The translations under genes and the position numbers were made by a program. A model generated the notes under the pieces. The model worked only from the letters and a program-made list of their open reading frames with translations, made no database searches and was not told the DNA's origin. A stretch of 63,915 bases of DNA, the filler included, from Olpidium bornovanus S191 (Eukaryota; Fungi; Olpidiomycota): assembly GCA_017911155.1 (NCBI GenBank). It is 29 parts of 29 records of this genome, joined end to end, with 100 filler letters (N's around TTAATTAATTAA, not from the genome) between each part and the next. Parts side by side here need not be neighbours in the genome. Positions count along the whole stretch, not along the records: positions 24,680 to 27,749 come from JAEFCI010005186.1; 28 more parts are not named here. One strand, given 5' to 3'. Positions 24,580 through 27,749 of this stretch are shown piece after piece. Within the stretch, counting starts at the first letter, position 1, and each line of letters starts with the position of its first letter.

Positions 24580-24764
24580 NNNNNNNNNNNNNNNNNNNNN
24601 NNNNNNNNNNNNNNNNNNNNNNNTTAATTAATTAANNNNNNNNNNNNNNNNNNNNNNNNNNNNNNNNNNNNNNNNNNNNGAAACTTCTTGCTTGACCGCC
24701 CCCCCAGCGGCGACAATTGCAAAAAAACACCGGCAGGGGGGGGGGGGGGGGGGGGGGGGTTTTC

Positions 24765-24811
<47 letters not shown>

Positions 24812-24995
24812 CTGTTCGGCGTAAAGCGCCCGGGCGAAGGTAGAATAAGCTTCGCCTCGCGCGGGCATAAAAGGCGCGCGCGCCCTCCGCCCGCCGCCCC
24901 TCCGCCCGCCGCTCGGAAACACCAACACAGAAACCGAGGGCGAAAAAGGAGGGAAAGGACGGAGAAGAAAGAAAAAGAAAAGGAAAAAAAAAAAG

Positions 24996-26994
24996 ATGGC
25001 GGTCGCCGCGCTCTCTTCCGCTGTGGCTGCGGCCACCGTGGCCGTCCGCGAGTACTGGCACGTTCCTGAAGCATGGCAGTCCGACAACATGCGCCGTGGT
25101 CTGCGTGTTAAACTTGAGGTGCGGACAGAGGCTGTTGCGGACAGAGGCGGGTCGAATTCACGGGCGTCGCCACATGCCGTGCCACACAAAGCGGAGGCAT
25201 GGAGGACCGAAGGCGGCTCTCCCGGGGTGCGTGTGGGCGCGGGTCTCTGACGGTTGGCCACCGGAGCAGAGGTCCCAAGCCCACAGCATTATCCGGGGGC
25301 CGCCGGACGTCCTTCTCGCGGAGGCTTCTTGTGGGCACGGCCGTGTGCGCGGGTTGTAGATGAAGTGGATGCTCGGAGGACCAAAGGTGGCTCTCCCGGC
25401 GTGCGTGCGGGCGCGGGTCTCTGACGGTTGGCCACCGGAGCAGAGGTCCCAAGCCCGCAGCATTATCTGGGGGCCGTCGGACGTCCTTCCAGCAGAAGCT
25501 TGCGTCTGCTGCCCAGCGACGGCGCAGAGGGCCGAAGGCAGCTCTCCCGGGGTGCGTGCGGGCGCGGGTCTCTGACGGTCCGCCACCGGAGCAGAGGTCC
25601 CAAGCGCGCAGCATCGTCCGGGGGCCGCTAAACGTCCTTCCTGCCGACGCTGCCTGCCGAAGCTGCTGCCCGTGGCCTTGTAGGTCTTTTTATCTGCGCG
25701 GTCTCGGACGGCCCCATGCCTGACGTGTTTCCCGATTTCCTTCTTTTCACGCCCCGGGGCAGATCTTGGTCAACTTTCTCGACAAGGTGACGGTGCCGGG
25801 GGCGTTGGAGGTGTTGCTTGCCGACCGGGAGGGCCTGCAGGATTGGTGCCAACACGCGTTTATCCTGGCCGGAGGAGACACGCGTGTGGGACCGACTCGG
25901 GGCCCTCCTCGGAGGTCGGGAGCTCCGCTACCCTCGGGTGCGACAAGCTTGGGGACGTTGGGCCAAGCCTGGGCGCCCGGGGGCCATGGCGCGTCGTCAG
26001 GGAGCCCCGGTCTGCTTCATCCTCCCGCACCGACCGGATCTGCGCGCCCGGTGCCTGGGGAAGTTCATGTCAAGCCTTCCGTGCGAGAAGGTGCCCACGA
26101 CCTCGGAATGCGTCTCCCTGTCGTCCCTGCGGGAGATCAATCCGGAGCGCAAGATTCAGGAATGCTGGATCTTCGATGCGGACACAATGGCGGTCGTCGG
26201 GGGCTTCCGGCAGAACTTCGCGACGACGACGACTTCGAACCGGTGGCACCGTAATTGCCAAGTTTTGCTTGAAACTCAGCTTGGAGTGAGCCGTTCGGCG
26301 TGCCGGCAGCACCGCGCTGGTGGGAAGATGGCTGGCTTTGGGCTGGCCAGTCCGCGGGGTGTGCGGGAGCTTCGCGAGTACCTCGCGAAGCCAGCTCTTC
26401 GAGCTGAGCCAGAAGGACTAGCTACGCGCGCCAATTGCACTGCGCAACATGGCCTTGTTTGCGAGTTTTTGTCCTACGTCAAAGCTCACGATTCGTGCCT
26501 GAGCGATGGGCTCTCGGCCTTCCACAAGGCTTTCCCTGCGGCGCTGCCGCCGATGTGGACGGCGCACAATTATCAGGTGAGATAGGTCTTGATTGCGCGT
26601 CTCCTTGTGCGGTTTAAAGACGCTTTGATCACGGGGGCTGACAAAAGCCATGCTGTTCGTCATTCTCGAGCCCCGCATGCACGTCGATCGCGACGCCAAT
26701 CACCTGTGCCTGGCTTTTTGCATGGAGGAGCCGGGCATTTCTGGAGGCGAATTCGTCTTGCCGGCCCGCGGCTTGTTCTTCAAGCTGGAGGACCACCTCC
26801 TGTTCTTCTTCGCAAACAAGGAGCCGCATGGGACGGCCGTCATGGACCTCCCGGAGGGCCATGAGGGCCGCTTGATGATGGCTCACGCGATTCCGCGGCG
26901 CCTGTGGTCATTTGTGACGACCAGAGGTTTTGGACCTGCGCCGGGTCTTCGGCGCTCTGAGCCTGGAGGCCGGTTACTCCGCAAGTGGTCATAG
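24996..26994 (+). CDS. TET/JBP-family 2OG-Fe(II) dioxygenase (putative nucleic-acid base oxidase); possible frameshift, so it may be a pseudogene
   Basis: Model: exons 24996-25118, 25763-26576 (frame change near 25850) and 26671-26994. Motifs are GKMAGFG, spliced TAHNYQ/PRMHVDRD (HxD at 26680-26688), GGEFVLP, HGT (26827) and GRLMM (Arg at 26869). His-to-His spacing is 49 aa and His-to-Arg 14 aa. Exon 1 is less certain than the catalytic exons. Confidence 0.75.
25201..25645. repeat. Three imperfect direct repeats of a ~115-bp core (periods 174 and 151 bp)
   Basis: The core GGCTCTCCCGG.GTGCGTG.GGGCGCGGGTCTCTGACGG...CCACCGGAGCAGAGGTCCCAAGC...CGTCCTTC starts near 25201, 25375 and 25526. Confidence 0.92.
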
Positions 26995-27139
26995 CCATGA
27001 TATTCGGCAGTAGATCGTCGGTGGCATCAAGGGCCGTGAGCGCCCCTAAGTGGATGTATCCGGGCTCGCCGATGAAGACGTTCTCAGACACTCTGAGCCC
27101 TTGGGCGATGACTCGACGCTTGTTTGAGGTGAGGAGCAG

Positions 27140-27749
27140 GTCGGGATTGCGGTCAAGGTATTCGGTGACGGTGTCTCGGGCATTGACGGGGTTTTCCTCG
27201 TCTTCCCAGGTGGCTTCGGACCTGTCGGAGCCAAGCCAAAGGACGAGGTATTGTTTTTTTTCTGCGCCGAATACGCTTCCCAATTACCGCTTCTACCTCG
27301 TACTCGTCGTTCTCGGAGCGCGGCCGGCTGACCTTCCTTCCTTTGCCCGGTTCCTCGTACTTCTGCAGGAGCGAGACGTGGAAGACAGGATGGATCTGGG
27401 CGAAGGGCGGAGGAAGTGCCAGTGTATAGTTGTCCTTTTTGTCTTTGTCGGTGACAAGAAAAGGGCCAACATAGGGCGCTGCGTATTTTCGGGATAGCAG
27501 TTTTTCCTCGTGCCGGAGTCCTTCTCGGAGAAGTGGATGTCTTTTCGCCGTGAGTTGCACGCCTTGGCTTGTCGTGCTTGAGCTCTCTTCAAGGCGTCCT
27601 GCGCCTTTTGGAGCTTGGCAGATAAATTGGCCAGGGGACTGTCCTTCCGGATGCCGTCGAGGCCACGAAGGTCGGTCCCGAAGGCCAACATATGTGGCGA
27701 CTCGCCGGTGATTGTGTGGGGCATCGCGTTGTGCGCGAATTCCAAGAGA
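27140..27749 (-). mobile_element. Chromovirus (Ty3/gypsy) integrase C-terminus plus chromodomain, frameshifted
   Basis: Reads NAMPHTITGESPHMLAFG...AQARQAKACNSRRK/YVGPFLVT...YTLALPPPFAQIHPVFHVSLLQKY (GPY/F module). This is followed by EYEVEAVIGKR/QYLVLWLGSDRSEATWEDEEN (chromodomain). Confidence 0.92.

Follow-up and report, generated by a model that had tools for sequence, protein, structure and literature searches.

A Ty3/gypsy chromovirus lineage in Olpidium that very probably carries an antisense, intron-bearing TET/JBP-family gene

TET-family enzymes oxidise methylated DNA bases, and in 2014 Iyer et al. reportedly described TET/JBP genes carried by fungal DNA transposons. Among Ty3/gypsy retrotransposons, plant Tat/Ogre-type elements and some chromovirus lineages have additional antisense frames downstream of pol, before the 3′ long terminal repeat (LTR), and a gene placed antisense to the genomic RNA retains its introns through reverse transcription. 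Here we analyse a piece of the Olpidium bornovanus S191 genome (Olpidiomycota; assembly GCA_017911155.1) that is very probably the 3′ portion of a dead Ty3/gypsy chromovirus, from a lineage that carries an antisense TET/JBP-family dioxygenase gene between the end of pol and the polypurine tract (PPT) and 3′ LTR. The piece, positions 24680–27749 (record JAEFCI010005186.1), is the usable sequence of a 63,915-nucleotide stretch of joined genome parts, hereafter the window; the source assembly is fragmented and of metagenome type (PMC7865070), and the Olpidium contigs used here are 1–10 kb long. An initial annotation of this DNA had suggested that the TET-like gene might be antisense chromovirus cargo, and that suggestion is supported by a junction shared with other copies, by PPT and LTR sequences lying beyond TET in relatives, by parallel divergence of the two genes and by purifying selection on both.

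Fungal TET/JBP genes have been surveyed on the DNA transposons Kyakuja, Dileera, Zisupton, Plavaka, EnSpm, hAT, Harbinger, IS3EU and Helitron, in hosts that so far are Basidiomycota and Pezizomycetes, among them mushrooms, rusts and truffle-type fungi, and the same survey, of December 2025, includes no retrotransposon encoding such an enzyme and offers reasons for this (Kojima 2025, PMC12730594). Our full-text literature searches found no later report of a TET-carrying retrotransposon. The Olpidium locus resembles the TET-bearing DNA transposons in being a mobile element with a separate TET/JBP gene, multiplied copies and a presumed escape from silencing, and its best structural match, CcTet, belongs to the mushroom TET expansion; its carrier, however, is an LTR retrotransposon rather than a DDE or HUH element, and its hosts are Olpidiomycota and uncultured relatives rather than Dikarya. 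In keeping with the distinction that the initial annotation drew from the known link between TET genes and KDZ DNA transposons, the neighbour of the gene is a retrotransposon pol, and no such case was reported by Kojima 2025 (PMC12730594). With chromoviruses such as Tf1, MAGGY and Tcn1-like elements (PMC2864245) the lineage shares the order reverse transcriptase (RT), RNase H, H2C2, rve, SH3 and chromodomain, TG...CA LTRs with inverted ends, and a PPT; it differs in having about 2.2–2.4 kb of additional sequence between pol and the PPT, in which an intron-bearing enzyme gene lies in antisense. Tat/Ogre-type antisense frames are alike in the position and orientation of the extra gene and in that introns can persist because of the antisense orientation, but they are mostly without known function or fold, whereas the gene described here encodes a predicted DNA-base dioxygenase of recognisable type and has a TATA promoter. 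Retroelements have also acquired other parts of the host cytosine-methylation system: retrotransposons of dinoflagellates and charophytes encode DNA methyltransferases (de Mendoza et al. 2018, PMC5890265), and Copia elements of arthropods have taken up a methyl-CpG binding domain (PMC6673714); these writers and readers lie inside the coding sequence of the element itself, in contrast to the separate antisense gene for a TET-type enzyme found here. New here are the class of carrier, the group of hosts and the placement of an intron-bearing gene in antisense.

The junction between pol and the TET gene

The minus strand of the window holds, at 27149–27749, a pol fragment comprising the C-terminal part of an integrase (end of the core linker, SH3-like domain and chromodomain) that is cut by the right edge of the piece. 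Two frameshifts divide the fragment into three overlapping frames, and tblastn comparison with the unbroken frames of contigs L001 and L005 revealed no in-frame stops. Both Pfam domains of the fragment score above cut-off: a Tf2-1-like SH3 domain at 27357–27494 (minus strand; PF24626 SH3_Tf2-1, E = 3.2e-12, 46.8 bits, cut-off 30) and the C-terminal chromodomain at 27149–27305 (minus strand; PF00385 Chromo, E = 5.5e-7, 29.8 bits, cut-off 25.1). The chromodomain match spans profile positions 14–53, the first profile positions falling in the neighbouring frame, and the unbroken counterpart in L001 reaches E = 2.7e-13. A TET/JBP-family dioxygenase gene on the opposite strand (24996–26994) converges on this fragment, and with its stop codon at 26992–26994 the gap is about 154 bp, in agreement with the roughly 150 bp between TET stop and gypsy integrase–chromodomain first described for this locus. 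Direct reading of the intervening sequence likewise bears out the earlier statement that neither a PPT nor a TG...CA LTR separates the two. The chromodomain frame does stay open to 26840, overlapping the TET 3′ end, and this continuation (26840–27148, minus strand) is present in the list of open reading frames as noted before, but it is not conserved as coding sequence: in both L001 and L010 the pol frame terminates directly after the chromodomain, and we therefore regard the long open frame as a by-product of decay. The nearest DNA to the window is O. bornovanus contig L003 (91–94% identity; 94% in the pol fragment), and in the alignment of the two the variable region of junction and TET tail is about 100 bp longer in the window. 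Because TET (one frameshift) and integrase (two) are both broken, the window copy is most likely inert.

The contigs of five Olpidium TET copies (the window, L003, L001, L004 and L009) continue beyond the 3′ end of the gene, and the convergent junction is present in every one of them, with 130–155 bp between the conserved end of TET and the end of the chromodomain. These copies represent at least three lineages that share only about 65% DNA identity with one another, and L001 and L009 can be joined in a single 1559-bp alignment that runs through integrase, junction and TET. The same convergent junction occurs in two contigs from other read sets, L010 (Logan run SRR19317540) and L011 (SRR19317539, 99.8% identical to L010). 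The initial annotation had asked whether other TET copies share the junction; besides the five Olpidium copies, L010 does so with an unbroken frame running from RT and RNase H through integrase to chromodomain. Of TET, L010 has the last part of exon 2 and all of exon 3, separated by an intron in the same place as in the other copies; the stop codon of exon 3 overlaps by 4 nt, in the palindrome CTAG at 755–758, the stop of a 910-amino-acid minus-strand frame without internal stops that encodes RVT_1, RT_RNaseH, Integrase_H2C2, rve, SH3_Tf2-1 and Chromo domains. This overlap leaves no space for an LTR between pol and TET and implies that the 3′ end signals of TET must lie within pol coding sequence. 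As RT and integrase share one L010 frame, the integrase belongs to a retrotransposon pol and is not of the Ginger/Polinton type. Word-indexed searches with the integrase returned short fragments only and no RT-linked Olpidium protein, and the RT link was recovered from L010 as the contig of a distant TET relative. Close relatives among 5.8 billion proteins were limited to three O. bornovanus gene models (GCA_017911155.1) and one Logan contig, and two scans of Joint Genome Institute metagenome contigs with TET alignments found no relative.

Two further contigs indicate what lies on the far side of TET. In the 9.9-kb Olpidium contig L009, beyond the TET promoter and on the pol-sense strand, a run of 11 A residues is followed by AGGAAGTGGGGGGGG and then by a 497-bp unit that starts with TGTCACAG, ends with CTGTTACA (TG...CA, with mutually inverted ends) and has AATAAA near its end; after this unit L009 has no TGG motif or gag. 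Judged by these motifs, the arrangement is the signature of a PPT and 3′ LTR. Contig L012, from a European Nucleotide Archive (ENA) metagenome, has in element sense the antisense TET exons with a TATA box, GGGGGAG, a 256-bp LTR (TGTCATAG...TTACA, with the TATA sequence TATATAAGG and AATAAA), the primer-site-like TGG motif TGGTAGCTGAGGCA and gag (Retrotrans_gag, Pfam E = 9e-14); L013, from another sample, is 99% identical and ends short of the pol side. The initial annotation had treated a PPT and LTR directly after the chromodomain as telling against the cargo proposal; in L009 and L012 both lie beyond TET. We infer an element layout of LTR, primer site, gag, pol (RT, RNase H, integrase, SH3 and chromodomain), antisense TET cassette of about 2.2–2.4 kb, PPT and LTR, which is pieced together from different lineages.

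The protein identities of TET and integrase rise and fall in parallel between copies, and between lineages the ratio of non-synonymous to synonymous substitution (dN/dS) is 0.09–0.16 for TET and 0.16–0.23 for integrase, with saturation at synonymous sites and few amino-acid changes. Both genes were under purifying selection between lineages. In recent pairs (L001/L006, and exon 2 of the window and L003) dN/dS is about 1, as expected of dead copies.

The antisense gene and its TET/JBP affinity

The TET gene of the window consists of three exons on the plus strand, at 24996–25118, 25763–26576 and 26671–26994, separated by GT...AG introns in phase at 25119–25762 and 26577–26670, the second with GTGAG, a CTGAC branch-type motif and AG. 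Exon 1 is conserved in L002, L004 and L009, intron positions are conserved across L002, L004, L009 and L010, and the position of intron 2, YQ|PRMH, is identical in the window, L002, L001, L004 and L010. The expectation that antisense cargo could keep its introns is thus borne out by two retained introns at conserved positions, which would survive retrotransposition because they are antisense in the genomic RNA of the element. Upstream, 24844–24995 (plus strand) contains a predicted promoter and 5′ untranslated region, with the TATA-like sequence ATAAAAGG at 24867–24874 and a purine-rich leader at 24935–24995; TATA-type boxes comparable to that of the window precede the ATG in L002, L009 and L012, and a purine-rich leader also occurs in L009. 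A single frameshift, in exon 2, breaks the window copy, which also has a shortened acidic C-terminal tail. In L001, L003, L004 and the proteins P0024 and P0027 this tail has a repeated SEP...GDD-type motif, conserved from Olpidium to environmental relatives, and in unbroken copies it reaches or enters the antisense end of pol. The deposited Olpidium models P0002, P0003, P0004 and P0031 (loci L001, L003, L004 and L009) are chimeras in which TET exons are fused to the translated antisense strand of integrase or to low-complexity sequence, and the P0002 model leaves out the HxD region.

Tandem repeats had been placed beyond the TET exons. Three units of one repeat family (D1), 151–174 bp apart, do exist at 25189–25652 (plus strand), but they lie within the first intron, the exon upstream of them (24996–25118) being conserved in L002, L004 and L009. 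Each unit has a near-invariant core of about 65 nt (window 25225–25300, 25399–25474 and 25548–25623), of which L002 has one unit in its intron 1 (1471–1546) that is 88% identical to the window, against 69% for the coding sequence. The core is predicted to form a hairpin of 25 pairs at about −37 kcal/mol, with one compensatory change (C–G to U–A) and z-scores of −1.9 to −3.6; its role could be that of a precursor of small RNA, of a cis element in the RNA of the retrotransposon or of an enhancer within the intron. At gathering scores Rfam returned no genuine match in the piece and none for this hairpin, and in the TET upstream and intron 1 region (24680–25800) the sole match with E no higher than 1 proved to be a low-complexity artefact.

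Assignment of the encoded protein rests on profile and fold comparisons. A profile of the five copies searched against PDB sequences matched only CMD1 of Chlamydomonas (E = 0.015), across HxD...GGEFVLP...HGT. With HMMER the family profile recovered 32 relatives among 1.84 billion representative proteins, including P0042 (E = 4.5e-4 for the whole library), which by itself passes Pfam Tet_JBP PF12851 (36.5 bits against a gathering score of 34.9) and which hhalign connects to the family with a probability of 93% (E = 3e-7). An AlphaFold2 model built on a 27-row alignment reached pLDDT 77.8 and pTM 0.72, superseding an unusable earlier model on 5 rows (pLDDT 32), and Foldseek matched it best in PDB to CcTet (E = 3.4e-10), CMD1 (6.4e-9), human TET2 (7e-7) and NgTET1 (1e-5): the top 22 ranks are CcTet, CMD1 and TET2, NgTET1 follows at 24–26, and FTO, PHD2 and AlkB-type enzymes rank lower. 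The predicted double-stranded beta-helix is therefore nearest in fold to solved TET-family enzymes. Its putative metal triad comprises an HVD or HID motif that opens exon 3 (HVD in the window) and HGT about 50 residues further on. The triad histidines are invariant in all five aligned copies and the aspartate is kept in the window, L002, L001 and L003, the decayed copy L004 being without a complete triad; environmental members and P0042 also keep the triad, and an arginine 10–14 residues past HGT, in most but not all aligned members, is a candidate 2-oxoglutarate-binding position. On the CMD1 profile match, the link through P0042, the confident AlphaFold2 model, the Foldseek ranking and the conserved HxD and second histidine, we assign the protein to the TET/JBP family as predicted from fold and profile. 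It shares the double-stranded beta-helix and HxD...H with CMD1 (Chlamydomonas reinhardtii, PDB 7cy4–7cy8) and CcTet (Coprinopsis cinerea, PDB 7vpn, 7w5p and 8jkk), but with only 13–19% sequence identity over the aligned fold and moderate TM-scores of 0.43–0.46, and its helical N-terminal part and acidic SEP/GDD tail set this family apart.

The substrate of such an enzyme cannot be read from sequence, and the alternative that survives best accepts TET as true cargo but makes it a passenger or gives it another role, acting on RNA, N6-methyladenine (6mA) or thymine, or as a non-catalytic DNA binder. The top structural match, CcTet, has been crystallised with both 5-methylcytosine (5mC) and 6mA DNA, and CMD1, the sole PDB sequence match, makes a different 5mC modification using vitamin C. 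The conserved metal triad and a dN/dS of about 0.1 nevertheless argue for a retained enzymatic function, and the closest structures are all DNA-base-modifying enzymes; we consider a passenger or a differently employed enzyme unlikely, if still a serious contender.

Evidence against the cargo reading and alternative origins

Several observations weigh against an antisense TET gene as cargo of a chromovirus. The five Olpidium copies are all decayed, and integrase is truncated in all three in which its upstream side is visible: beside TET, the integrase fragments of L001 (about 1794), L009 (5725) and L004 (about 3099) end at three different points, each without the catalytic core. Neither paired LTRs nor a target-site duplication was seen in one contig together with gag, pol and TET, and the longest contig (9.9 kb) is a truncated copy without a second LTR. 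The single LTR of L012 could stem from tandem elements, from a circular form or from assembler collapse of two identical LTRs, although under each of these origins TET is on the internal side of the PPT–LTR boundary. No LTR is visible in the window because the piece ends, a dozen bases past a run of seven G residues, where an LTR would begin, a point at which a short-read assembler would break. The window protein, run as single exons and as a joined protein, stays below the cut-offs of Pfam 2OG-FeII_Oxy_6 (PF20515) and Tet_JBP (PF12851), with E values of 0.1–0.3 and 11–13 bits against cut-offs of 27 and 34.9 and matches confined to the last 40–50 residues. Finally, contigs L005, L007 and L008 contain chromovirus ends that are about 50–70% protein-identical to the TET-linked ones and have no TET behind the pol stop, which is followed in L005 by an A-rich tract and in L007 by a shorter stretch rich in purines; L008 extends just 240 bp past the stop. 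The TET cargo thus marks one sub-lineage or was lost in others.

At the left edge of the window, the sequence beyond the TET promoter (24680–24811, read on the minus strand) holds 46 A residues at 24766–24811, 24 C residues at 24736–24759 and, at the very edge, seven G residues followed by CGGTCAAG; as a remnant of a PPT and LTR start this motif series is doubtful. The corresponding place in L009 is taken by the run of 11 A residues, AGGAAGTGGGGGGGG and TGTCACAG. A search for LTR-start motifs succeeded in L009 and L012 only; the window lacked a clean TGTNANAG start, and L002 and L004 likewise gave no match. When the candidate LTRs and every flank were compared with all loci by sensitive blastn, only homopolymers matched. 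The adjoining G24 and T46 runs (24736–24811 on the plus strand) may be real features of the element rather than sequencing artefacts, since L005 has similar long A-rich tracts and C runs.

The differing truncations are most simply read as independent decay, and a shortened SH3–chromodomain product of the truncated integrase is conceivable; in L009 the fragment has an ATG start and an open frame of 172 codons. The missing catalytic cores also suit a different origin, in which TET is a host multigene family and a chromovirus inserted preferentially just downstream of it, or in which a host segment of TET and a dead integrase fragment was duplicated, and a gene with its own promoter and introns does look like a host gene. 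Insertion downstream would, however, put a 3′ LTR between chromodomain and TET, whereas the PPT and LTR are on the far side of TET and in L010 nothing separates pol from TET. A passenger fragment should moreover be neutral, yet integrase dN/dS is 0.16–0.23 between TET-linked lineages, a constraint not expected of a dead stub carried along by a host gene; truncation points that differ among copies fit independent decay. We regard a host-gene origin as improbable. A LINE-type retroposition of element transcripts, suggested by the differing truncations and the A46 run, was set aside, as the truncations are accounted for just as well by independent decay, and L009 has a PPT and LTR where a terminal poly-A would be expected.

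The initial annotation had held chance adjacency in a graveyard of transposable elements to be equally possible, with an unrelated TET gene or fragment beside a dead chromovirus end, and the very fragmented assembly and nested fragments nearby (a reversed CCHC knuckle in L006 and a second TET fragment in L009) would suit such an accident. That parity no longer stands: the same junction and spacing recur in five of five assessable Olpidium copies from lineages about 65% identical in DNA, L010 and L011 have it with a spacer of zero, TET and integrase diverge in parallel, and independent NCBI, Logan and ENA assemblies argue against one misassembled sequence, leaving chance adjacency barely credible. 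Equally remote is an integrase from a DNA element (Ginger, GingerRoot or Polinton/Maverick), which would return the locus to the known link between TET and DNA transposons: such elements bear H2C2 and DDE integrases related to gypsy ones (PMC2836005, PMC6839031) and the fungal TET genes known so far ride DNA transposons (PMC12730594), but the L010 integrase–chromodomain is the C terminus of an unbroken frame with RVT_1 and RNase H, which rules out a Ginger or Polinton identity, L012 combines gag with an LTR and a primer-site-like motif, the reading frames scanned across the loci gave no transposase domain, and GingerRoot transposases are without a detected chromodomain (PMC6839031).

The neighbourhoods of these copies contain further fragments. 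In L005 (596–1439), behind the pol stop and A-rich tract, lies a presumed LTR of about 650 bp that contains long runs of C, followed by a tRNA-Pro(GGG) gene at 1362–1434, which hints that the element inserted beside a tRNA gene. L009 holds a second, isolated TET exon 2 fragment on the other strand (830–1045, plus strand) and an array of 31-bp repeats encoding proline-rich sequence (3308–3694); a further segment of about 75 bp (2353–2431) matches L001 at the point where integrase similarity ends, which suggests the end of another inserted element. L006 has a CCHC zinc-knuckle frame at 440–664 (minus strand; Pfam zf-CCHC, E = 1.9e-5) opposed to an integrase N-terminal zinc finger at 620–1141 (plus strand), an arrangement that points to nested or rearranged elements.

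Proposed role and significance

Integrase chromodomains bind chromatin methylated at histone H3 lysine 9 (H3K9) and guide insertion there, according to Gao et al. (2008) as cited in PMC6839031. As in other chromoviruses, the chromodomain of this lineage would steer integration into H3K9-methylated heterochromatin. The TET enzyme would be produced from an antisense transcript through its own TATA-type promoter and could oxidise methylated bases on element copies or their surroundings, and methylation-based silencing of the family would thereby be blunted, a role already suggested for TET genes on DNA transposons of fungi (PMC12730594). By this analogy the element-borne TET may have an anti-silencing function. 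We tentatively propose, with slightly less confidence than doubt, that a chromovirus lineage of Olpidium-like zoosporic fungi, also widespread among environmental samples, keeps a catalytically competent, antisense and intron-bearing TET/JBP gene under purifying selection and uses it to demethylate its own copies after chromodomain-guided insertion into heterochromatin.

The chromovirus–TET family would be a counter-example, in an early-diverging fungal lineage, to the confinement of TET to DNA transposons, and if the reading is true it is the first known retroelement to encode an enzyme of the demethylation pathway. It would also be a natural case of an antisense gene that passes through retrotransposition with its introns intact. 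For genome annotation, TET gene counts in such genomes would reflect transposon copies rather than host genes, and several deposited Olpidium gene models, the chimeras described above, read through the antisense strand of integrase. An element that pairs a chromodomain reader with a TET enzyme that could erase a silencing mark would open a new group to tests of the arms race between retroelements and DNA methylation.

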